A DNA stretch of 64,000 bases from Phallusia mammillata. Its lineage: Eukaryota. The stretch spans positions 26,722,001 to 26,786,000 of the forward strand of contig OZ281496.1 of the NCBI GenBank assembly GCA_965637545.1, written 5' to 3'. Shown piece after piece: positions 30,836 to 60,103 of this stretch; position 1 is the first letter of the stretch, and every line of letters starts with the position of its first letter. A model generated the notes under the pieces. It did no database searches. It saw nothing but the letters and a program-made list of their open reading frames with translations, and was not told the DNA's origin. Made by a program: the position numbers and the translations under genes.

Positions 30836-31762
30836 ATGGATGTATTTACGAAAGCATACAAAGCATTCTATAAATCAAGGCGTTGGACTGGTACGATTTT
30901 AGCCACTGCATTGGCTGCGAAAAATGGTGTCCCACATCTGTTCCCAACACATGGATTTATGCCTTTTCATGCTTCATTTATGGGATCACAGTTTCCACTG
31001 GACCATATGGTATTGTTGCTAAAATCAACCAAGGCTGAACTAGGAGTAACTGACCCAGTTTTGCCATTTGTCACAACCCGAGCTGATGTTGTAAGTGCAG
31101 GGTTTTCCGCTTTCTCGAAGATTAAACCACCATCTTCTATTGGAATTCCAAAAAATTACTTCTGTAGCAATATCTTTGAGCTAGACGACCTAAACATTAC
31201 AGTTGGAACAAATGAAAAGAAGCTTACAACGTATGGCCCTAGTGAACGTATGTTACTTGAATCACTGATACTGTCAGAATCTGCTCAAAAATTTGCCATT
31301 GCTCGGCATATTGCCTATTTAAAGCAAAACTGGGCAATTCTGCAGTCATTCCTGCCTAGTTTTTTCGTTGCACTTGGTTATGTAGCATGCTTTATTGGGC
31401 CAAGATTGCTTTTCAGTGGTACCTCACCAGTTTTTATACTGACTATTGTTCGCTATACAATTGCATGTATTTTTATAACATGGGTTGCGTGTAAACTAGC
31501 CAAGGCCATGTTGACTCATAAAATAGTCAACTCTGTTGATCGGAAAGCTGCAATGATATCCAAAGAATATGCAGAAGGTGGAATTGAATATTATGAAAAG
31601 CTTTGCTCTCGGAATAAGGCAAACCGAGCACTGCTGGGCAAGAAAGGTGAAAAAATGTTCACAGTGTTTGGTAACCAAGTTGATGGACTACTTGTAAACT
31701 GGAATGGACCAACTCTAACAGAACGAATTAGTAACATTAAAAATATTTCCAAAAGTTTTTAA
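30836..31762 (+). CDS. TMEM177: Transmembrane protein 177 (mitochondrial inner membrane, COX2 assembly), intronless CDS, 308 aa
   Basis: Motifs ILSESAQKFAIARHIAYL, DRKAA....YAEGGIEYYEKL and RALLGKKGEKMFTVFGN match the recalled human LSREAQKFALAREVVYL and GGVEFYEKLLSGNLALRSLLGKDGEKLYTPSGN. Confidence 0.92.
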   Translation: MDVFTKAYKAFYKSRRWTGTILATALAAKNGVPHLFPTHGFMPFHASFMGSQFPLDHMVLLLKSTKAELGVTDPVLPFVTTRADVVSAGFSAFSKIKPPSSIGIPKNYFCSNIFELDDLNITVGTNEKKLTTYGPSERMLLESLILSESAQKFAIARHIAYLKQNWAILQSFLPSFFVALGYVACFIGPRLLFSGTSPVFILTIVRYTIACIFITWVACKLAKAMLTHKIVNSVDRKAAMISKEYAEGGIEYYEKLCSRNKANRALLGKKGEKMFTVFGNQVDGLLVNWNGPTLTERISNIKNISKSF

Positions 31763-32189: not shown

Positions 32190-35100
32190 CTATTCGTTTA
32201 AAATGCCTGCCATAATAGAATCCAGTTCATGGGGCGTTGTCCACTTTTTAGGAAATTCACCCACCAATTTACCATGATCAATCTTTTCACTATAATCGCT
32301 TGCCTGATCATTCAGGGAGGTTTTTAGTTGCTTACTTAGCCCAGGTACATCCAAATCTACTGGATTACTATCATCTACCTCACTGTTGACACCAAACATA
32401 GGCATTTCACCATTCAAAATGGAGGTAAGCTGTTGGGTTAAGGCCTGAAATGGCAAGGGTTGAGGCACCTCTACATTACACGTAGTGGTTAAGGCATTTT
32501 TTTCACTGCGATAAATGATGGCATCGATTTCACAGGCAAGAACATCAGCTGACCAAGGTTTACGCACTTCAGAAGTCATCTCTGAATCAGTAGAAACATA
32601 ATCGCCAGACAAAATTTGTTGGAACTGCATTTCAAGTGACAAAATTTGCTCATCAAAGCGCTTTTGCCCTTGAGAGCAATTTTGCATACTAGGATCATTA
32701 TCAATGCATTCCAAAGACTGGTCACCATCGATGATTGCATCAAATGCATTTCCAATAGCTGTCACAAACAGCTGGGGCCTGTCATCACCAGACAAGGACT
32801 GCCTACCACATTGCATGTCACAAATGCAATCATCAAATGTTGCACATGTTTCATTAGCTTTGCAAACATCTGCCAGCAATGGCCCAAGAACAACAGCATC
32901 ACCTAGGAGTACAGGCAATCAATAAGAGATGAGCAATTGTTTAATCCTATTTATTATAATAGATCATAAATTTTTTTTAAAAAATGACATTATAACAAAT
33001 CTAGTTGACCTATTTACAATGTTTGGTATGCAGCTTGAAGCTGAGATGAAAAATGTTCTTTTCAGATCTCAATTTTGTACTTACTGAAAAATTGGTTAAG
33101 ATCTTCAATTGCTACTCCAGGCTTAGAACAGGAGTCACCATGACACAACTTTCCACAATCAACAAAATCCTTAGCTCCCTGTTGAACAAACATGTTTTGA
33201 CAACTAGGTTTTTCTTTATAATTTGTAACAGACACATTACACACTGTATGGTAACTAAAAGCACAGTTTCAGATGGCATCCCAAGATATACATACAAAAT
33301 CAAGTTAATTCCATATCTGTGTGTATATCAAATAGGGATCATGAATCCTAACAGTTGCCATTTAGTCAGATAATCATCAAGTTAGTTGCACGATCCAGGT
33401 AATTGCATAAAAAGTTTGGCAAGTTATTTATGCAATTAACCACATAACTTCAAAAGCTACAAGATTTGCTGTGAAATGCCACATGTTTCATAGCAATACA
33501 ATACAAGTACGAACAATAAACTTCCCAAAAGAAATTCAGTTTCTTTTAGGGTAATGATAAACCAAAACAAAAAGCAAACATTATGGCATAATCACAATCC
33601 AGTTGCTATAGTAAAAAACAACCTACATGTTTAGCTGTTGTGATGTCTAAATCGTTTTCCCCAAGATCCCAGGAACAATCAGAAGAGGCATCATCCACAT
33701 GCAAAGCATTGCTAGTCACATTACCAAATCGCCGGATCATGTTGGACATAGCAATATCATCTGAATTGAAAGTTATTTGTGGGCTCTTGTCGGCCTCTTG
33801 GCTAGTCCTGCAAAAATTGTATGGGTAAAAACGACGTAAATAATTACAAAAAGCAGAAAAACGTGTAAAAACCGTTGTAGTGTAAGTTTCTTGTATTAAA
33901 ACTTAAGGACTTAGGATAAAACCCTGCTAATTATTTATGGGTCTGTACATTGTTTGTTAAACTAAATGTGTTTGTTTTGGTTTATTTATGTAATAATAAT
34001 ATCGGTACTGGAGTGTAGGCAATAAAGCACTACTTGATCCATCTACTAGGCGCACGATCGATTTATGAGGGAAAAAAGGGATTTAAATTGCGCCTTATGG
34101 TCCGTAAAATACGGTAGGCTTAACACCAAGTCCTGTGTTGTAAACATTGTTGTGAAGCAAAAGCTTCCTGTCCAGTATTTAGTTTTGTACACAGCTTACC
34201 ACTTCCTTTGCTGAACAAAACCAGTTAATCTAATAAACCACAACTCAAATACTTACAAATTCTTGTAGGTATTAATCAAGTTGGACACCAGTTTCTCAAA
34301 GTTTTTGCAATCCTTCAGCTGGGAAAATTTGCTCGCTTCAATGCAGCACAAAAGCTTGCCTTTTACCTAAAAAAAATACAAAATACATAGTAAAGTTGTA
34401 CAAATAGGGTTATATGGTGTAAAGCTGTTGTCACATTAGGTTTCATAATTAAAAAGTCAACGACCACAAAATGAAATTGTGCAATGATTATAGTTTACAC
34501 AAGACGTTTGACAGTAAACATGTTTTGTCGGCAAGTCATGATAATTGGTTTGTATATCACAAAAACAAGTGTGGTTTCAATGCTATAATATTGTATTATA
34601 TTAGACAACACCAAAGTGTAGTTACCTCTGCAACTTTTTCTGCATTTTTTTGTGAAACCAAAGTAAGACATTCAGTTATGTTATCCACTTGGTCTAATAA
34701 CCACTGCTCTCGTAATTGCAGTTGGTGTTGTTGGTTAGAAAAGGCAGCATGTATCTGGCTTTTTACCTTAACAACAACTTAATAAAGTCAGAGAAATATT
34801 ATTTCTACTGTAGCATTACGCAGAGCCTGTAAACATGAGTCACTGCAATGACTAGACAGTACAAGCAACAGGCACATCACGACAAAACAACAGGAATCCC
34901 TAACATGTTTATAAATAGACACTACTGAAGCTGTATATATAATATTTTCAGGAAGTAATTAGTAAATTAATTGTAATCACTCTAAAACAATGCATATTTA
35001 AAACATTTTCACTGTATGTTATTGTTTGTTGTCATATAATATTGATGTCATACAAAATGCAATATTATGCCATGTATGTCATTTAAAATGTTTTCCAAGA

Positions 35101-37283: not shown

Positions 37284-40200
37284 ATGGCAAACTATTCAAG
37301 AATACCATCAGGTAAGTTTAGTTGATACTAACTGAGTTGAAAAACGTACGTATCTCTAAAACATATTGTACGTTAGTTAAATAGTCTTTAAAAAGCGTCA
37401 CACAGTCTCCTGTTAAGCTTTCTGCAACTGAACACAGTCTAAAATACAGGGCTTTGTGTAATTTGGCTAACGTTTTTTACTTGTTTAGATGAGGCATTAA
37501 TTGGCGATGAATTCTGCAACGAAGAAATTATTAGTAAGTTTTTAAGCACCAGTAAAATTCTTATTTAAAGTGTTGGTTGTCATACGTGCAGGACCTTGAA
37601 GTCCCTAGACCTTAAGGAACCTTAGCCTATATGCAAAAAAAAATAAACCTAAAACTTATTAGTTGACATGAAAACCCCACAACCCAGCATATCACACATA
37701 TTTTCAACTTTAGAAATATACGGCAAAGGCTCAATAAAGGCATTTTTCCGTTTAGGTGCGCCTTTGTGCAACGATGGAATACAAACAGAAGATCACCTTG
37801 ATTACAGACGGTACGCCAAAGTTTTGTCCCATCATTTAAAACAAGCTAGAGGGCCACTTTCAATCGGAATTTTTTCTGCATGTGGAAATGGAAAATCATT
37901 TCTGCTCAGGCTGACAAAAGGTTGGATTCTGTAAAAGTAAAAAAAATTCTAACACAAATGCACCTTTTTCGTTTAATCAGTATTTTCAAAATCTCATCAT
38001 ATAGGTATAGGCTAACACAGGGGTCGGCAACCCCTGGAGATGGTTTTTCATGGCAAGTCAACCGATTTGCGTGTTCATATGAAGTAACAATTTACCCTGT
38101 TACACTGCTTGTTTATGCTTTTTATCATGCCATTGTCTCAAAATTCAGCCTTACATGCACAAAACACTCTGCTTTCTCTTTATTATTGATATGCGCTGGC
38201 ACGAACCACAATTATTTAGAAAAACGTTGGCACGCGAGGTCATTAACACATGGAAATAACAAGTAAGCCAAAAAGGTTGCCGACCTCTGGGCTAACAGCT
38301 GTTTTGGTTCATAGATCCAGTAAAAAGTATTCTAATTCGATGGAAATGATCGAATCTTCTCCAATTTACGACCATTTATATATCAATGTGTGTGTCCTGT
38401 GACTACCTTTTGTTATCATTTTCCAGAACTACTAACTACAAAAGAAACCAAAACAAAGACAAATAAGCTCCGGTATGTTTTCTTTGGATTTTTGTCGCTT
38501 GTGGTGTTTGGTTTGCTCATAGCTGCTCTTGCACATACAATTGAATGGTTACAAATCGTGGCTGTAGCGGTTGGAACCGTATTTGCAATTCTAATGCTGT
38601 TGCTATGTGCCACAAGCAAATCGGAAAGCAATGGGCCATATTGGAAAGTTCTTTTCTGTGCCGTCTTTAGCAACATGCCACGTTGCATAACCCCAACTAA
38701 CAACAGGTAATTAAGTTAAATAAACTTTTATCAGAGGTGCGGTATTTGTAGTGCATTTCACACTGATTTTCGTTACTTTGTTTATATTATCTTCTCCACA
38801 ACTAAGATTATCTATTCCAAAAGCGAGATACCTGAATGCTAAGATAAAATAATTATATCATACCAGATAACAACAAGCCCATGATGTGTGCACTTTAATA
38901 TAACTGCTCAACACCACATGTGTAATTCTCTACCCATCAAATTGGTGCAAGTCAAAACAGATTGTTTCCTCTAGAAAATTTATCCATGTTGATTTCAATG
39001 TTTGGGAACATGGCGGAAGTCACGACATTTCGGTTGCGATCGTCACTTCCGTTGTTGATCGCGTGGAAAAGAAATTCGGATCTTTTACCGTTAGACTTTT
39101 CCGATCAATTACTTTTAAGGAATCTCAGATTGAAGCTCAATTCAAAGGTTTGTTATAATTGCACAACAATGAATTCTATACTAAAGGCCATCACAGTACA
39201 CCAGTCCCATTGAAGGCGCCATAATGATCGAATCAGCCGGTCACCAAATCAACTGGCGTACTGTGATTTATATATGAGTGTGCCGTGATCGCTGCACTGC
39301 ATAGACGCTTCGGGGCTGATCCCAGTTATGAGTTTATGTTCATCTTCTCACAAAAGCGTTTTAACCAAAATCGATTTTTTGCAGGTTTTTGTTGCCATTT
39401 CTGGCATTATGGAACCAAAGTTATATGGGTGTCCATTGCCTTTGTTGTGGTTCTATTGCTTTCTCTGTCAATTGGAAAGTTTGACGTGGAAAACGTACGT
39501 ATTATAATGTTTTAAAAAATACCTTTTTTAAATATTAAAGCAATTTTTTATGCTTTTTAGAACTTTCATTTGGCTCTTTGGACTACGCCTACCGCTGTTG
39601 GTGCTTTGAGTGCAATTTGGGCGGCATTGAAAATAATCTACGCCCTTTGCAATTCACAAAGAGCCCGCATAAATAGAGCTCTTAACCGGACAGGGAAAAG
39701 CTTGTCTGAAAAACAAGATTTTATGAAGCTAGTTAAGAATGAGGTTAGAATTTTTCAGTGTGATTACCCTGATGAAGGTGACTTGAATATATCTATGGTT
39801 AAAACAATACACTTGTCATTAAAGCATTATTTATTCCTATCCATAATCAAATACCAAACAATTAATGTACCACCCAGTATACATGCAAAGTTAGTACTTC
39901 AATTGTTTGCTTTTAGGTCAAAGTAGTGTCTAACTTTCTACGTTCCGTTGAATATGTCTACGACCAACAATACAAGATTGTGGTGGCAATCGACAACCTA
40001 GATCGTGTCACACATGACAAAGTAAGTCGTTAAAACGTTTTTTTTTTAACTCAAATGCTAAGAATAAGGACAACAAAAGTACTTCGACCATTCGACCTTA
40101 AAGAGGCGTCATACCAAATTAGCAGATAACCATCAAGCATTTCCATGTAGCGAGGCGTAGGAGACTTTACTAACTGAACTATAAAGGCTCCGTGATGAGC

Positions 40201-43200
40201 CCATTGAAAGTCGAATCACAAGCACCGTTGCGCGCCTCGCTGCACACGGGAATTTAGAAAAAAGTAACTCCGAATCCACTTGTCATATAGCACTTGTCAT
40301 ATAATTTTCAGGTTCGCAGTGTTCTTGATGCTGTAAACCATTTGCTAAGCGATGATTCGTCACCACTTTTCTGCCTCATTGCTGTTAACCCTGCGGTGGC
40401 AGCAAAGGGCATAGATCAGAAGTACAATGGTAACAAATATCTGAAGAAATTCATCAATGTGCCGTTCTATTTTCCCGAGGTAACGTTTAGAAATTACGTC
40501 CCAAAAAGAATCTAAACCATAATTCCATTGTATGTTTGGAACGGTAGAGCTACTAACACGGTGCCTCCTGGGTGATCCAAAAGTGCCTAATTTTTAAAAC
40601 GGTATCTCAAAAAATGCTAATGGTTAGGGCTATTAGGGTCGGGGTAAGGTATTAGCATTTAAAATTCAATAAAACTAACCCAAAAAATTAGTTATTAATG
40701 TAAAATTTTTAAACATTTGCATCCTCAACCAACCCTCTTTAGCCGCTAAATAAATAATTCAGCTCTTTACGCCACCTATAAAAAATTAAGCACTTTTGGA
40801 TCACCCAGGAGGCACCGTGTTAGTAGCTCTACCGTTTGGAACTGATTTGTTGTAACTTGTAACACCTGGGTTATATCCAATGGCCAAAAGTTTTACCTGA
40901 CAATAAGTGTTTTTTTAACTATATAAAACTTTATTTGTTTCAAACATACGCATAAAGCAGTGTTTAATATGAGACATGGTGCATGTTTGTGATTGGTTTC
41001 ATGTGTCATTCCTGAGTGTCCACCAATGAAACCTCTTTTCTACCAAATGAAAGGGTTTAAACTTCAAACTAACTTGCAGATTAACCCTAGCATCAAAACG
41101 TACCTTTCGTCGATGCTTGAAAACGGATGTGAACAAGTACGGGTAGGTTTGGCAACAGTTTGCAAATAGTATTTTATAAATACAGTTTTAACGAACGGGT
41201 ATGTTTTCACAGACACCACAAAGAACTTGGGACTTTTTTGACCAAACCTATGCTTTTGAGGTGACAAGGTAAAAGCAAATCTTGCACATGTTTGTGTAGT
41301 TAGCATTGAGAACCAACAAGTATAATCAGTTATTTGAACTACTTAGAATAAATCAAACATTTATAGTTACTAAAGTTATATAACGTAAAAACTAATACGT
41401 TTAAAAGAATATTATTAAAAGTTAAAGCGTCCGTTAGTACCATTTAATTCGGTTGTACGCGCTGGCGTACGTAACCTAGGGTGTTTTTTTTTTTTCTTTC
41501 TTTTTTTGTTCTTCACGGGGTTCGAACCTAGGAACCTCCCGGGGACGAATCCCGATCAGGTTTTTTATGTCTGTATGTGGGAATCCCGATCAGGTTTAGC
41601 ATTAGCCCCCCTCCAAAATTAGACTCTCCTCAAAAATTAGACTCTCCACGGGACGTACCATAACTTAACAGACAAACTTAACCGGAAAAAGTGCCCTAAC
41701 GACAATTTAAGTCACCATGTGTTAACTTTTTCAGGGAATTTCTTCAAACCGATTTTTGTATTCAACATATTCTACCCAATCCTAGAAACATCAAACGGAT
41801 TAGGAACGTTGTTTTCATGGCAATCACGTTTGTCGCATTTCACGATCCTGAGGTTGGGTTTTAAAGGCTAAAAGGAAAAATCCTGTATCTAAAATATAGT
41901 TTAATCATAAACATAGCTGCCAAAGAACTGGTGTATATAGAATACATCATGCAGACGTTTTCAAATTTGTTTAGCATTACACCAGTTGAACGACAAATTT
42001 GTTAAATCTATGTTGTCATCTTTAGTGCAGGTTTGAGAACAGAGAATGTTGAAACGTCTGCATGATGTATTCTATTTACACCAGTACTTTGGCAGTAATG
42101 TTTATGATTAAATTACTTTTAAAGTCCGTCTATAGTGTTCCCAAAAATATAGTATTATGTAAACCAGTGGTGTTTTTTGTCTTATGCAGGAGATGATAAT
42201 GGACTCCTTGTCAATTACAAGGAAAGAGCGTAGTATGCACGAGGAAAGTTCAGTGCAGCGGGCCATTCAGGACTACATAAACATACTTAAGGTTAATGGT
42301 TTGGATAAGTTCTTCAACTTGCTCGGAAATTTGCAGTTCAGCAACAAGGATGGTACCTATGCCAAAGAACTTTTACAAGAAACATTGGAAGTGTGCAAAA
42401 CCTATGCCAAATTTGCAAATAAAGCAGACACCAACGTTCTGGCAGCAAAAGATGCAGCAAAAAGGGCAAACAACGCTGCGATCCAGGCTAAAGAATCGGT
42501 GCTCGTTGCCAAAAAGGCAGAAATCATGGCTAACCAGATAGCACAAAATGCCAAGAAAGCCAAACATGCCAATGCTGAAGAAACCACGGCACATTGCAGC
42601 AAACAAAGCACTTCAGTTGAAGCTACAGCGGGTGCATGTACTGCAAAGGAACCTAAAACCAAGAAGCAATCCTCTTTAAGATTCGATAGATTTTTTGTGA
42701 AAACAACTACTGATGAAAAAGTCAAAGAAAATTGCAGAGAAGCAGAAAGACTCGCCAAAGAAGTCGCAAATGAAGCCCAAATAAATATGGGCCAAGCACA
42801 ATCGGCAGCAAAAGAAGCCGAAGATGCTGCGGAGCGCGCTTTGAACGCCAAACGAAGCTTATCTAGCGATTCGGTTGCAAATGCGTGTGAGATAGCGGAA
42901 AAATTTGCAAAAACAGCAATGGAAGCCAGGAAAGTAGCCGAAAACGCTGCTAATATTGCTTTCACCAAAGCTAGCGATGCTAATTCTGTTGTGAAAAACG
43001 CCTGGAATGTTGCTGCCAAGTTTGCTGCGGTAAACAAAGCTAAAGTACAGGATGTAAAGAAGGCATTGACAAAGGACTTTTGTGAAAATCTAACTCTCCT
43101 GATTATAATGATTGAGCAATGGCCGTTTTTGACAACACTGCTACTGCAACAGATGAATGATAACCTTGCAAACGAGCAATGTGTCAATGCAATGAATGAC

Positions 43201-43896
43201 GAGCACAAATCATTGCAGGACGTATACGGGTAAGAAAAAAAAATTCGCGTTTAGAAAAGTAATATGGATACAAATTTTAGTTTTTTAGAACACTGCACAC
43301 GTCTTTTCTCTTGAATAATCAAAGCATTTATATATTTTTGGACAAAATTAATTGGTTAATATATTTTAGATTAATCTCATATACGTTTATATAGGTTGAG
43401 TCACTTCTACAGTAACAATAATACAGTTGATTTATCGTTTTGCTGTTATTTATCGACTGGATTTAGTTTTTTTTTAACATTAACCCCTTTGAAAAGGTAA
43501 AGTGAATGGAAGTAAGTGTTTGGATTAGGAATGTCATTAGTTATAATATTGTAGCCTTCTATGCGTTTATATAGGCTAGACCTGGTTACAATTCTGCAAT
43601 AATTTGATTTATCGTTTTGCTGTTACAGAGAAGTACAATTGAGCCAGATGAATCTTGGCGCTCTGGACGAAGACAGGCAAGTTTTTGAGCGTCTGCTGGT
43701 TCAAATGGAGAAATCAAATCACCGATTAAACCACACAACAGCTCGCAACCTCCAAAAATATGCCATCAACTTTGACCCCAGACAAGTTCGGAGCTTCTCA
43801 GCCCGTGATTCGAATGTAGTTGATCAACCAGAGCAGCGAAATGTGCATGCAACTTCACCAGCACGAAAAACCAACAAACATGAAGTGATCGTCTGA
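37284..43896 (+). CDS. KAP-family P-loop NTPase with 4 TM helices (NKPD1/Kidins220-like), paralogue 1
   Basis: In-frame exon chain from the ATG at 37284: EDHLDYRRYAKVL..PLSIGIFSACGNGKSFLL (Walker A, about 37790-37915), TM pair, FIHVDFNVWEHGG, TM pair, DFMKLVKNE, IVVAIDNLDR (Walker B, about 39977-40006), AVNHLLSD..IAVNP..YLKKFINVPF, LPNPRNIKRIRN, EQWP, DEDRQVFERLL, stop at 43896. Confidence 0.9.
38018..38289. mobile_element. hAT (Charlie-like) MITE, 272 bp, in a KAP-1 intron
   Basis: TIRs CAGGGGTCGGCAACC / GGTTGCCGACCTCTG and a perfect 8-bp TSD GGCTAACA. Confidence 0.9.
40543..40833. mobile_element. MITE, 291 bp, with about 53-bp TIRs starting GG and a 9-bp TSD (Merlin- or Mutator-like)
   Basis: GGTAGAGCTACTAACACGGTGCCTCCTGGGTGATCCAAAAGTGC (44 bp) is perfectly inverted at both ends and flanked by GTTTGGAAC direct repeats. 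Confidence 0.9.
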
Positions 43897-45307
43897 ATGT
43901 GTGCAACCTAAGTCGCATTTAGTGCAAACTTATACGAAGTAATAAATGTATGTTTTTAATGTGTAGTGATACTGGAATGTTTTGAATTTGTAATTTGACA
44001 AAGGAAATAGCCGGCGTTTAATTCTTATATTTGTTTCGTTTAATGCTGTATGCATGCCACTTGTTCATTGCAAAATAAGCCTAGTTTGTAAAGCAAACCC
44101 TTCCATGGAATAAAAATGTAAATTTTTCCAATGTCTGTAATTGCGAAGTACTCAAAGCAGTACTATAAAGTGGGATTCTTTTTTGGTGTTGTGTAGTGGT
44201 TTATATGTATTATCAGACAGTTGTAGAACTGCTGCTGGCGCTTATACCAACGTATATTCAATACTAGTTTTTTTTTTCCTTTTTGCTACATTATTGCAAT
44301 GCGTAAACATTTTTTAGTTTCTTATGTTGTTGTTGCCTGATTCAAGCATATATTAGGTGTGTATAGAATAAGTGTAAATAGATTGTATAGAATAAGTGTA
44401 AATAGATAAAACTTTTAAGCATTTTAATGGAAGATGTACATCTCGTTAAAACATATAATAAAATATGCATAGTGTATATTTCGGACAAGTGGTCATATGA
44501 AAGCTGACGTTAGTAAATTCGTTTCTCTAATACAATCAAATAAATGCCAGGTGTTACACAGCCAAGCATTCCAGCTCCTCGAACGACAGAATGATCAAAT
44601 AACAACGCGATGTCATGAACAGACAGACATTCGTAAGTCTAATTTACCACACAACGTAATTGCCATGAAAACGATTTGTAACACAATCTGTTTAAATGGA
44701 AACGACAAGTGACAACAAGGAGTTTACGCAGCGTCGGTAACGCCACGCCGTATACCATGTCAATTCATCTGTCCTGGGAAAATTGTAATTTGTTGTTGTC
44801 CGCTATAGTTATAAACAACGTTTTGTTACATACTTTGTTAGAAAGCAATTTAAAGGTCGGGAAATTGAGTTGCTCACCAGTTGCTAAGGTCCTGTGGTCA
44901 AGGTGAGGATTCTTTAGGGCAGTGGTTCAGTGCATTTTCAAACATGCGGCTCACCATAAACTAAACTTACTTTCCGCAGCACTCTTTGCAGAACAAAAAC
45001 ATTATAATACAACTAGTTTCGACCAAGATCTAAGAAACCGATTGTTCGTAAAATGAGTATTACACAATTAAACTTTGTCACTTAAACCGATAAATGTTGT
45101 TGTTGTTGTTGTTGTTACGCGTTTGACGCTGTACGCTTTTTTGACTACATATATATGTTTTTAGTTGTAATATTTGGTTTTCAGATTTTTATAAAGTGCA
45201 AAAAGCGAACAGTGTTTGCATTTGTAGCGAAATATCGTTATTGTTTGTTGCAGACAAATCAAATCAGGGTTTTCCCAGGGGTTTCTTAAAATTCAGATTC
45301 TGGCGCC

Positions 45308-48300
45308 ATGGCAAATCACGATAAAGAAAAGCAACAATTTGGTAAGATTAAGGACAGACATTCTTACTTTAAAAAGAAGTAATATGCACAAAATCTAAAT
45401 AAAAGTCTTTGGAGTACACAAATGCAGTACCACAAAAGCAGCATTATACTATGTTTTTTGTGTGCAGGCAAGCCCTTGCTTAACGATGGAATACACATAG
45501 AGGACCAGCTTGGATACAAAAATTACGCCGAAGCATTAAGTTATCAACTGAATCACGTTGCAAGCCCGCTTACAATCGGACTTTTTTCCAAATGGGGTAG
45601 TGGAAAGTCATTTTTGCTCAGGTTAACAAAAGGTCAGTGTGATTAATTAAAGTTATTTCAATACAGTAGTTAGTATCCCTTCAAACATTATGTAAGGTGG
45701 CCATATTTCATGGGTTTCAGAAAAATTACTGAGTGAATACACAAAATCTGGAGAGATAAAATTCGTCCTTTGGTATGGAATCATTTTCTTTTTCATTTCA
45801 ATTACCGCAATATTATGTTTCGTTGTCGGTATGGTAATTCAAACCAACTGGCCACTAACTGTTGCTGCGACATACGCTGGAATCCTACTGCTGACAGTGA
45901 TTATTATGCTACTGTTCTGTCTAACCAGCGAAAATAGAAAATCATATTGGAAACTTCCTATCTGTGCTACCTTTACCAAGCTGCGAGTTCAAGAGATACC
46001 TGATGAAAACATGTAAATATGAAAACTAATGCAAAGTTTGATAAAACAGCACACCACCAAAGTCTACAATTTCTGTATTTTTACCAATACCTTGTACTTT
46101 ATAGCAACATAAGTGCACGAAAATTCATTTACGTCGATTTCAATGCTTGGGAACATGGTGGAAGTGACGACATTTGGGCAGCGATCGTCACTTCCATTGT
46201 TGATGGCATGGAGAAAGAATTTGGATCTTTTACAGTCAGAATTTTTCGCTCTATTGATATTCAAAAGTCTCAGAACGCCATATTTTCTTGTAAGAATGAT
46301 AATTCGTTGACAATATTTAGTTGCCAATATTTAATATCACGTATTACTTTAATAATGAAAAGGTTTTAGACAGAGATCTTTAGGCACCACAACATACCCA
46401 ATGCAGCCAAAAAAGGCCCATAATTTTAGTTATCATATCACTAATTTTTTTGCAGGTTTCAAAAATTCGTGCCATTTTCGCACCAATATCTTGATACCTT
46501 CGGCAATTTTTTCTATTGTTCTATTGTCGGTGATACTGGTCATGTTTTTGCCAAAAAATGTACGTTTCAAATAATACAAAAATGCTTTGTTTGCTCAATT
46601 TTGTTCACTCTTTTCAGGGTTTTCAATTACCTCAATGGGTTCCTCCAGTTGTAGCTGTTGCATTAGGTGGAACTTGGGCAACATTGAAGACAGTTTATGC
46701 CTTCTGCAACTCACAAAGAACCCGCATAAACCGAGCACTCAATCGTACAAGAAAAAATATGTCGAAAAAACTTGGTTTCATGAAGCTCGTAAAGGATGAG
46801 GTAGTTTTCAGGAATTATGTGGAACCAACACATTAAATCTATAGTTGATTTTTTGTCATAGGTCAAGGCAGTTTCAGATTTGATTCATTTTGTAAGACAA
46901 GTCTACAAAGAAGACTACAAAATTGTTCTAGCAATTGACGACCTGGACCGCGTCACCCACAACAAAGTATATGATTGTAGGATGAAACGTAATAATATGC
47001 AGATTTTTGTGTATTTACGCCATTTGCTTAATTTAACAATTGGTTTACAAAATGTTTGTTAAAAAATATATGTAACTTTGGTCTTCCAAGAATCTAAGAT
47101 ATTAGGTTTGTAGGCATTACTTGTCGAAATTTACCAAAAGTCATGTAAAAAAAATTTAGGTACGCAGCATTCTTGATGCGGTGAATATACTTCTAAGCGA
47201 TCAATCGTCCCCATTCTTTTGCCTAATTGCTGTTGATCCCGTGGTGGCAGTTAACAGCATTGACGAAAGGTGTGACACTTCTATCAATGTCAAAAAACAC
47301 GGACATGAATATCTCAAGAAAATCATCAATGTGCCGTTTTGTTTACCAGAGGTATAGTAGTTACTAATTGCATTTATCTTAATATTTGTGGAGTGTCTTG
47401 GGACCTGGTCTAGCCAGTTGGTTTTAATTATTATTGTTAAAGTTGTTTAGGTGTTACGCACAGTCTATCCGTTATGCGTTAAACAAAAAAGGTTACCTCG
47501 AATTACCCCGATTTAGGTTACCCCGAAATTGACACCTTACCTTGCTTCGCTGCTTAAAGATGAAAACGGACAAGTACCCGTAAGATGCTTAACATTTGCC
47601 AAATATTTTAACCGCATTTTCCATAAACATGTTTTCTTTCCAGTCGTCAGATGATCAGAAAAAGGAAACACAAGCCGAGGTGGCTAGTTTGAAGGGTAAT
47701 AAGATCGACGAACAGAAAGAAGAAGCACCGAACGCGGAAATTTTTTTTCTTCAAAATCAAGCGTACAGTGCAACCTGGTAAATTAGATTTTTTTAGTAAA
47801 ACCTGCTTTTGCTTTAAATGTTACGCCAAGAGTCGAATTGTGTAGACAAAAGATATTTTAGTGTTGAATAACTGTAAGTATGTAGTGATTTAACTATAAT
47901 TATAATCACTATATGAAATCACTATAAAAATGAATTCCTATAATTTCCACCTGCTCGACAGATATATCTGTGGCCCTTTATTGAATAATTATTCATGTTT
48001 ATGGCCATTATATGAGGCTTTACAAAAGTAATTTAGCAAAATATTATGTTTCAGCAATTACTTAAATTTTAAATTCAACAAAATAAAGGAGTTATTTTTA
48101 GGCAATATCTTCAGAAAGACTTATGCAGAGAACACATCCTACCAAATGCACGGAATATTAAACGGATAAAGAACATTGTATCCATGGCAGTCCAATTCGT
48201 TAAATTTCACAATTTTGAGGTAAGAAACAAAACAGAAATATTGTTGCAGAAAAATAAAGCAGCGTGTTTGTATTGCAGGATGTTGTCGCAGACTCGTTGT

Positions 48301-50195
48301 CAATTCCTCGTCGCAAGCATAAAATTGATAAAGATATAGACGACACCAATGACCTCTTTATAGAATTTTTCAAGGACAAAAGCGACAATTCAAAAGTCAA
48401 CTCTATGATTGAAGTTGGGTCTTACACATCAGATATTCTAGAAAAGATTGAAGATGATATCAAGGAAAACAAAATAACAGGTACGTCACTCATTGAAAGT
48501 GTGACAGGTACGAACACAAAATAGAGGAGCGAGATAATAACTGAAAAACACCGATGAAAAAAGGCATCACCACCAAAAACAATCATGCATGATGCAGTAA
48601 AAGTAACCGACGTATCTTAAGTTGCCAAAAAGCAGGTTAACACCAACAACAACAATTCGCACAAATAAAGTAAATGCTGGTAGTAGTTTTGGATCTAAAC
48701 ACATTCTGTGTTTGCCTTTATTTCTTTTTTTTCGATTTGGTAATCTCTACCTAAAAACAAAAAAAACTTTCCGCATCAATAACAACGCAAGATGGCCTCT
48801 AAAACAATAGTTTTGCTTTCAAAAAGTGCTTATGGCATCAAGAGTAGGGTAGAGCTACACCATACCTCACGGCGAACTCACATTTAGCCACATTTAACTC
48901 ACATTTTGCTAAAGTTAGTTTTTTTGGAAATTTTACGTCAGGTATTTAGTTTTGAGTTAGTTACCTCGCACCAACCCCAAAAAACCTAACCGTCAGCATT
49001 TTTAGGGATATATATATAATTTTTAATAAGTATTCAAACTCTTTAAGTCGCCTCTTCGAATTCACCCTAATACCGTGAGGTAGAGTGTTAGTAGATTTTC
49101 TCAAGAAAAGTGGGTCCACACAGAAGCTTTCCACAGACGGTTGAAGTACATTCTTTAATGGCACATAAGGAGTGAAAAGCACCCCTCTTATTTTTTTACA
49201 AACAAACAACAAAATACATAGTTTCCGCTCTGTTTACAGAACAACCACCATAGACAGTCGACAAATTACTTTTTAGGTGCGACTTAGGTTAACTTCAGGT
49301 AAAAAAAAACTTTAGGTGAAAACCATTGGCAGTTATATACCCGCAAAATAGCTTGCAATGTTGGCATTGTGCCCAAATTTATCTCGATCATTTTACCAAA
49401 TTTGGTTTACAGAGCTGTCGGAAGTAAAAGCTGCATTAACAAAGGACTTTTGCGAAAATCTCACTTTGTTGATTTTGATGATTGAGCAGTGGCCTTTCAT
49501 GACAAGTATTATGCTGCAAAAGTTGGAAGATACTTTTCTGAGCGCAATAAGAGACGGAAAAAGGGTTCACGGACACACATCACTCCATGAAGTTTACAAG
49601 TAAGAAGAACTATAAGTGGTGGCAGATTTGCATTTATTTTGAACCCAAATACAAATTTGTAACGGTACTACATGCACTTAAATTTTGTTTTTTTGTGGTG
49701 AAACTTTGTTGTTGAATGTAGTACGATTATACCTAATATCGGCATTACATACATGCTAATCGACCGAGCTTAGTTTGGTTTGCTTCATAGTTTACTTTTT
49801 GTATCATACAAAACTAAATTTGAAAAATGTTCCGTATTTTAAATTATCTTTTCGCACGCCTATGCTCCGTTACGCCAACTACCAGAAATTAATTAACCTT
49901 TGGTGTGAGTTCCTGTGTTAGTATCCCTACCGGTGTTTATGTCTATTGTATGCCTATTGCCTATATGTTGCGACGCAGGAACGAAAACTTAAAGGACCTC
50001 AAACCGAACGTTGCAGTGGATGGTGATCCGCTTGTTTTCGAGCGTCTGCTGATCAAAATGAACAAAGAAGGCCACCATCTGAACACTACAACAGCTCGCA
50101 ACCTCCGAAAGTACGCCATTAATTTTGACCTTAGGCAAATGCAGACATATCTCGCCTCCAAAGAGGACGTTGTTCAAACAACGCAACCAACTTAA
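45308..50195 (+). CDS. KAP-family P-loop NTPase with 4 TM helices, paralogue 2
   Basis: In-frame exon chain: EDQLGYKNYAEAL..PLTIGLFSKWGSGKSFLL, TM pair, FIYVDFNAWEHGGSDDIWA, TM pair, LGFMKLVKDE, IVLAIDDLDR, AVNILLSD..IAVDP..YLKKIINVPFCLP, LPNARNIKRIKN, EQWP, DGDPLVFERLL, stop at 50195. Most intron positions match paralogue 1. Confidence 0.9.
48849..49102. mobile_element. Degenerate MITE related to 40543-40833
   Basis: Begins GGGTAGAGCTAC..TACCTCACGG and ends CCGTGAGGTAGAGTGTTAGTAG (imperfect TIRs sharing the GGTAGAGCTAC / CTACTAACAC motifs). Confidence 0.5.
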
Positions 50196-59903: not shown

Positions 59904-60103
59904 NNNNNNNNNNNNNNNNNNNNNNNNNNNNNNNNNNNNNNNNNNNNNNNNNNNNNNNNNNNNNNNNNNNNNNNNNNNNNNNNNNNNNNNNNNNNNNNNN
60001 NNNNNNNNNNNNNNNNNNNNNNNNNNNNNNNNNNNNNNNNNNNNNNNNNNNNNNNNNNNNNNNNNNNNNNNNNNNNNNNNNNNNNNNNNNNNNNNNNNNN
60101 NNN
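59904..60103. other. Assembly gap (200 N)
   Basis: Run of N between the two Penelope arms; true length unknown. Confidence 1.

Follow-up and report, generated by a model that had tools for sequence, protein, structure and literature searches.

A tandem pair of KAP NTPase genes in Phallusia mammillata: a canonical copy beside one with altered catalytic motifs

The role of the nucleotide site of KAP P-loop NTPases in animals is unclear, both named vertebrate members of the family having lost the second acid of the Walker B motif. A locus of the ascidian Phallusia mammillata raises the same question within one genome. The stretch of DNA analysed here (the window; 64,000 nucleotides, positions 26,722,001 to 26,786,000 of the forward strand of contig OZ281496.1, assembly GCA_965637545.1) contains at 37284–50195 two head-to-tail, intron-rich KAP P-loop NTPase genes, both on the + strand, of which one (P2) is canonical and the other (P1) departs from the family at several residues of the nucleotide site. 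Is P1 still an enzyme, a protein with another role or a copy that is being lost? Its motifs point to a slow or non-hydrolysing, nucleotide-bound scaffold or regulator beside its canonical sister, a reading for which we consider the balance to be about even.

Nucleotide sites of the two copies

The two genes were delimited as follows.

37284..43896, + strand: P1, divergent KAP NTPase gene of 11 or 12 exons, about 880 amino acids (splice-aware modelling)
45308..50195, + strand: P2, canonical KAP NTPase gene of 14 exons, 732 amino acids (splice-aware modelling and tblastn of ascidian homologues)

In the literature, KAP proteins are grouped with the AAA+ and STAND classes among the ASCE NTPases, STAND proteins have two acids in Walker B, and the mechanism of KAP activation is unclear without structures, except for a proposed sensor-2-like Arg. 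A preliminary description of the locus had listed differences between the copies in Walker A, strand 2, Walker B and the AVNP/AVDP stretch, and each difference and coordinate proved exact on recheck.

37875..37898, + strand: Walker A of P1, SACGNGKS; G-K-S kept, family Trp replaced by Cys and Ser by Asn
45587..45610, + strand: Walker A of P2, SKWGSGKS
38994..39032, + strand: strand 2 of P1, FNVWEHGGSHDIS; family-invariant Ala replaced by Val and invariant Trp by Ser
46139..46177, + strand: strand 2 of P2, FNAWEHGGSDDIW
39986..40006, + strand: Walker B of P1, AIDNLDR; GAC AAC at 39992–39997, the second acid being Asn (AAC, 39995–39997)
46931..46951, + strand: Walker B of P2, AIDDLDR; GAC GAC at 46937–46942
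40381..40392, + strand: AVNP of P1; Asp ending the strand after Walker B (sensor-1-like position) replaced by Asn
47229..47240, + strand: AVDP of P2; sensor-1-like Asp kept
41778..41801, + strand: NPRNIKRI of P1, conserved arginine motif in the C-terminal helical part, the role of the Arg being as proposed in the literature

In P1, two acidic residues are gone, the second of Walker B and the Asp that closes the following strand; P2 has the full set. P1 also carries substitutions at the Walker A Trp, at the FNAWE Ala, at both Trp and Ala in LWAG and at the GHEYLKK Glu. It retains NPRNIKRI, the G-K-S of the P-loop, the first Asp of Walker B and, within DDLDR, the invariant Leu-Asp, and the arginine motif, a feature of family membership, is present in both copies (NARNIKRI in P2). 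Earlier wording of the P1 motifs as ‘degenerate’ is overstated for Walker A, in which loop length and G-K-S are kept.

The possibility that the Asp-to-Asn change is a sequencing error is disfavoured by the DNA run X2, which comes from the same study as the likely source sample and is weak evidence about the population. X2 contigs span all four P1 motif stretches with the same motif codons as the window; those covering Walker A (37650–38088) and Walker B (39317–40231) show 0 differences. A sequencing slip is unlikely because none of the 8 differences between X2 and the window in unique (non-repeat) sequence over 6 kb falls within the P1 motifs. At 40473, X2 has G where the window has T, which changes the second Phe of PFYFPE to Leu, as in the family consensus PFCLPE; the other coding difference (38434, A>G) is synonymous, and the intronic ones comprise five substitutions and one 1-nt deletion.

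In 118 segments collected from the family, Walker B takes three main forms. DDLDR or DELDR occurs in most lineages; DGLDS with an intact GKS occurs in long proteins of the Kidins220 type, seen in a mite and a cephalopod (named entries) and in a nemertean and a hemichordate (unnamed entries); and xNLDR without GK[ST] occurs in vertebrate NKPD1 (hagfish, elephant shark, sturgeon, frog and teleost), some members of which also carry AVNP. P1 apart, the second acid is D or E in all members outside the Kidins220 and NKPD1 clades, and on the tree it was lost three separate times, in Kidins220, NKPD1 and P1. This recurrent loss in animal KAP proteins makes the earlier proposal that P1 may be ATP-binding and hydrolysis-poor a fair one, with the binding residues kept and the second acid and sensor-like Asp lost.

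Duplication history and asymmetric divergence

P1 and P2 share 50% identity over 653 aligned residues; at the DNA level their exons are 70–80% identical and their introns are not alignable. Over 527 well-aligned codons, the nonsynonymous rate (dN) was 0.32–0.36, the synonymous rate (dS) 0.9–1.3 depending on method and their ratio (omega) 0.26–0.36, values that indicate an old duplication after which both copies were, on average, under purifying selection. In both family trees inferred, P1 and P2 are sisters with 100% support in the Shimodaira–Hasegawa-like approximate likelihood ratio test and share a long stem of their own, within a clade whose other members are ascidian proteins and unnamed database entries (99–100% support) and which lies apart from NKPD1 and Kidins220. 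Orthology of the pair with vertebrate NKPD1 or Kidins220 was rejected on the basis of these separate clades, and a clade uniting the Ciona protein P0005 with P1 and P2 was disfavoured by the approximately unbiased test (p = 0.027). At the one Ciona locus examined (L001), that of P0005, a single canonical gene was found, with no second KAP copy within 10 kb on either side.

The two copies have diverged unequally, P1 evolving 1.4–2 times faster than P2, and the asymmetry exceeds chance. Changes unique to P1 outnumber those unique to P2 by 1.4- to 2.2-fold with seven outgroups from the ascidian clade (57:36, 59:27, 64:38 and 56:34, for example), with p < 0.05 in six of the seven. Terminal branches are 1.4–1.8 times longer for P1 than for P2 (0.70 vs 0.49 and 1.15 vs 0.64). 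The excess extends to conserved positions. Of 72 columns for which conservation across 21 other members is at least 85%, 16 are changed in P1 only and 2 in P2 only; of 32 columns for which it is at least 90% across 27 members, P1 differs at 11 and P2 at 3, all 3 of which are also changed in P1.

Gene models, membrane architecture and the P1 insert

Gene models were built by comparing each copy with the other and with ascidian homologues. Every intron in the models is GT-AG, and intron positions are common to both copies.

37284–37311, 37756–37920, 38427–38706, 38975–39147, 39385–39494, 39561–39743, 39917–40021, 40312–40479/40484, + strand: P1 exons 1–8
41080–41142 (candidate), 41735–41852, 42190–43229, 43629–43896, + strand: P1 exons after 40484
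45308–45341, 45468–45632, 45721–46012, 46114–46289, 46456–46559, 46618–46800, 46862–46966, + strand: P2 exons 1–7
47160–47351, 47517–47579, 47644–47777, 48102–48219, 48279–48507, 49413–49599, 49979–50195, + strand: P2 exons 8–14
41080..41142, + strand: candidate P1 linker exon, INPSIKTYLSSMLENGCEQVR, counterpart of P2 exon 47517–47579
38427..38706, + strand: P1 exon with transmembrane helices 1 and 2, after the Walker A helix (hydropathy; corresponding to helices 69–95 and 103–133 in the model of homologue P0024)
39385..39743, + strand: P1 transmembrane helices 3 and 4 and the helix preceding Walker B (exons 39385–39494 and 39561–39743)
42190..43229, + strand: P1 large exon, one 346-codon open frame that ends with the conserved DFCENLTLLIIMIEQWPF block

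The start given for P1 in the preliminary description was right. Both genes begin with a tiny first exon that opens ATGGCAAAC (MAN...) and is spliced in phase 1 onto the Walker A exon; in P1 it occupies 37284–37311 (MANYSRIPS, donor GTAAGT) and its P2 counterpart lies at 45308–45341 (MANHDKEKQQF). The P1 stop at 43896 and the P2 start at 45308 leave 1.4 kb between the genes. That both genes are intact, as had been stated, holds for P1 in that all recognised exons are open (0 in-frame stops, all introns GT-AG), but is only putative across its join from 40479/40484 to 41735. This join can be made in frame only through a weak donor at 40484, a 20-nt exon at 41080–41099 or an unrecognised exon. 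The stretch 41080–41142 is a candidate part of the P1 transcript, matching P2 exon 47517–47579 in length (63 nt), in the preceding AG and following GTAGGT and in 40 of 63 nucleotides without gaps. Among the in-frame candidates, no P1 counterpart was recognised for the 134-nt P2 exon 47644–47777.

P1 introns are longer than those of P2 and contain high-copy interspersed repeats. These lie at 38050–38270, 39250–39330, 40600–40800, 41515–41580 and 41900–42110, where X2 contigs reach in sum hundreds to thousands of times the depth of the unique sequence beside them. Contigs of the RNA-like runs contain these elements too, at 90–95% identity; P2 introns are much shorter. The window as a whole is AT-rich and eukaryotic in character, with short GT-AG introns and one N run (59904–60103), and the nearest homologues of P1 and P2 are all ascidian (Clavelina, Ciona and Phallusia). 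Two single-exon open reading frames (ORFs) lie upstream of the pair, at 30836–31762 (+, 308 amino acids) and 32190–32918 (-, 242 amino acids); a Pfam scan matched no family to either, and the former resembles a multi-pass membrane protein.

Membership of the KAP family is supported by profile and similarity searches. Pfam scans covered exon pieces, and two exons gave matches: the P1 piece 40291–40512 matched KAP_NTPase (PF07693) with 26.3 bits (cut-off 20) and the Walker B exon reached 18.8 bits. BLASTP of the full models gave E-values of 5e-44 (P1) and 4e-60 (P2) to proteins that themselves carry PF07693 at 1e-25 to 1e-37. Both copies have the Walker A G-K-[ST]. The hhhhDD form of Walker B is present in P2 (IDDLDR) and not in P1 (IDNLDR), but it is not decisive for membership because the accepted members Kidins220 (DGLDS) and NKPD1 (xNLDR) also lack it.

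Hydropathy scans of P1 predicted four transmembrane helices, one pair separating Walker A from strand 2 and the other preceding Walker B; the scan of P2 recovered the first three, and the fourth, which fell below threshold, was placed through the alignment with P1. Both copies are predicted to have four transmembrane helices inserted in the NTPase domain, in line with the classical KAP layout described for Kidins220. An AlphaFold model of homologue P0024 (predicted local distance difference test (pLDDT) 71, predicted template modelling score 0.71) has the same order of helices and motifs as P1 and P2, with a strand at E402–408 after Walker B followed by D409, the Asp of AVD, at the sensor-1-like position. 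Foldseek searches with this model returned only weak matches, the best being the ring-forming RdrA of RADAR (E = 2e-3), with ORC/MCM proteins also among the leading ones. Among solved structures, no sequence match to the KAP domain was found, the sole Kidins220 chain in the PDB being its ankyrin repeats.

The large P1 exon includes an insert of about 250 amino acids (approximately 42400–43040), rich in Ala, Lys, Glu and Asn, where P2 has a 905-nt intron (48508–49412). Single-sequence prediction gave three long helices around a disordered linker (pLDDT 65–77). The insert matched no Pfam family and contains no tandem repeat at the DNA level, and no homologue of its exon was found among database proteins of 190–605 amino acids. 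A 268-amino-acid ORF on the opposite strand of this Ala/Lys-rich exon (42402–43208, -) is most likely a by-product of biased codon make-up and not a gene.

Readings of P1 and comparison with known systems

P1 and P2 are old tandem duplicates from an ascidian-specific KAP branch and, as predicted membrane proteins, would carry two helical hairpins inserted in the NTPase fold, which would place the nucleotide site on one membrane face, presumably the cytosolic one. P2, with its full catalytic set, most likely binds and hydrolyses nucleoside triphosphate (NTP). The P1 frame appears to be held open by selection still, under shifted constraints. P1 keeps what Mg-NTP binding needs (Lys-Ser in the P-loop, the first Asp of Walker B and the Arg motif near the C-terminus); it has lost the second acid, the sensor-1-like Asp and several family-invariant residues and has gained the predicted helical segment of about 250 amino acids. 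Such a protein would most likely bind Mg-NTP with slow or no turnover and serve as a scaffold or regulator, a step that Kidins220 and NKPD1 would have taken independently.

Several observations weigh against this reading. That the second acid acts in catalysis in KAP proteins is supposed by analogy with STAND and AAA+ proteins. P1 has changed at positions that even the degenerate NKPD1 conserves (the Ala of FNAWE, the Trp of LWAG and an Ile in ILLSD), and plain relaxation would equally yield such departures. When the ancestral-type P1 donor (exon end GAG at 40479, intron start GTAACG) is joined directly to the conserved acceptor at 41735, the result is a frameshift and a stop at amino acid 421. 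P1 exons had no coverage in the RNA-like runs X3, X6 and X8, the contigs of which fell only on intron repeats (90–95% identity). Searches for P1 orthologues yielded no candidate by words from exon 40312–40482, nothing at E <= 0.001 with the large exon (42190–43227) and no relative in a metagenome scan.

In an alternative that we consider rather unlikely, P1 is a duplicate being lost, unexpressed or mis-spliced, under relaxed constraint and without a new role. In its favour are the faster evolution with changes at family-invariant sites, the longer introns with high-copy repeats, the unrecognised counterpart of P2 exon 47644–47777 with the frameshift of the direct join, and the lack of any RNA seen. 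Yet about 880 codons are open over all recognised exons and in-frame splice paths exist; past the doubtful junction, family motifs persist over 473 codons, for which omega is 0.24–0.46. Long neutral drift is excluded because 4.2% of point changes in P1 create stops, such that the chance of an open frame after neutral change of even 0.05 per site is about 0.004. The RNA silence is not specific to P1, because P2 is equally absent from the RNA-like runs: all 12 of them contain about 1% of the words of 37600–47500, a stretch that includes half of P2 and is contained in only two DNA runs among the public runs, and the tissues sampled are probably the cause. Judged from its sequence, P1 is more than a decaying copy: about 880 codons are open, and pairwise dN/dS is 0.26–0.36 with dS near 1.2.

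P1 might still be an active NTPase that tolerates the Asn, with another residue, for example the Asp of LDR, acting in catalysis; we regard this as unlikely. In its favour, all 27 members compared, NKPD1 among them, have the Leu-Asp of DDLDR, which recurs in the Kidins220-type DGLDS and which P1 has retained along with GKS and the Arg motif, and the structure and mechanism of KAP proteins are not known. Against it, only the Kidins220 and NKPD1 clades, apart from P1, have anything but D or E as second acid, and in P1 the sensor-position Asp and Walker A Trp have changed at the same site. An obligate hetero-oligomeric sensor/executor pair in membrane surveillance or immunity, a stronger form of what the preliminary description had suggested as possible, would accord with two adjacent genes both retained since an old duplication, with the relationship of the family to the bacterial defence NTPases PifA and QatA, with the weak structural match to ring-forming RdrA and with the fusion of KAP to NACHT and LRR domains in amphioxus. 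However, the head-to-tail arrangement 1.4 kb apart is what plain tandem duplication gives, the one KAP locus examined in Ciona has just one canonical gene over 10 kb to each side, no known domain was matched by the P1 insert, and signs of interaction, co-expression, immune context or induction were not seen; the proposal was left unsupported, and we consider it quite improbable. In its most elaborate form, P1 and P2 would build one membrane hetero-oligomer in which P1 stays NTP-loaded and offers its insert as a binding or bait surface while P2 provides turnover, an animal counterpart of KAP-based defence in innate immunity; we would count this as very improbable.

The pair is real and not very surprising, because Kidins220 and NKPD1 show the same loss. 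It offers a natural before-and-after comparison within one genome, a canonical copy standing beside a sister with part of the change, so that two closely matched proteins are at hand for testing how an enzyme turns into a scaffold; it also documents an unnamed, fast-evolving ascidian KAP branch. Beyond that, it is ordinary asymmetric divergence after tandem duplication.

The closest known relatives are the ascidian KAP paralogues, among them Ciona intestinalis LOC100180590 and ‘Kidins220 B-like’, Clavelina lepadiformis LOC143462849 and others, and a Phallusia mammillata protein named after Ciona LOC100178218. Like P1 and P2, these belong to the same clade and have a short N-terminus, Walker A near residue 50, four inserted transmembrane helices and common intron positions, as well as the motifs DDLDR, AVD, GHEYLKKIINxPFCLPE and NPRNIKRI. 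Unlike the pair, their core identity to P1 and P2 is 35–47%, none of them carries the P1 substitutions, and most have a large insert between the strand-2 helix and transmembrane helix 3 that is lacking in P1, P2 and Ciona P0005. In paralogues P0009, P0011, P0007 and P0151, that insert is about 150–200 amino acids long, contains a conserved GVV...WW.V.Y and matches no Pfam domain. The public 439-amino-acid model of Ciona intestinalis ‘Kidins220 B-like’ lacks the Walker A exon and is N-terminally truncated, because that exon precedes the annotated start (L001:9781–9969).

Ascidian homologues match the PifA and QatA defence profiles; PifA and QatA differ from P1 and P2 in being prokaryotic with other partners and contexts, and PifA is described as being without transmembrane helices. 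Fusions of KAP to other modules were seen elsewhere, in proteins P0035, P0155–P0160 and P0148. Amphioxus has many such genes, one with NACHT and LRR domains and several with ankyrin repeats and a C2 domain, and in a stramenopile protein KAP is joined to TPR and ankyrin repeats; the pattern looks like lineage-specific module shuffling. Paired plant NLRs are adjacent paralogous NTPases of the STAND class, one with altered nucleotide motifs; typically they are arranged head to head, contain an integrated decoy domain and have been proven to depend on each other genetically. P1 and P2, in contrast, lie head to tail, both on the + strand.

Kidins220/ARMS, a scaffold according to the literature, resembles P1 as an animal KAP protein with four transmembrane helices that keeps GKS and has lost the second acid (DGLDS). 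It differs in its ankyrin repeats, SAM-like domain and long tails and in keeping the sensor-position Asp, and its loss is independent of that in P1 because it belongs to a different clade. NKPD1 is, like P1, a short KAP protein with a Walker B of the form xNLDR and Asn at the same position as in P1; it is not orthologous, and unlike P1 it has lost the first Walker B Asp and GK[ST] and kept the Ala of FNAW and the Trp of LWAG. As far as these sequences indicate, a KAP protein without the second acid is the rule among named animal members, and P1 is a third, independent and younger case.

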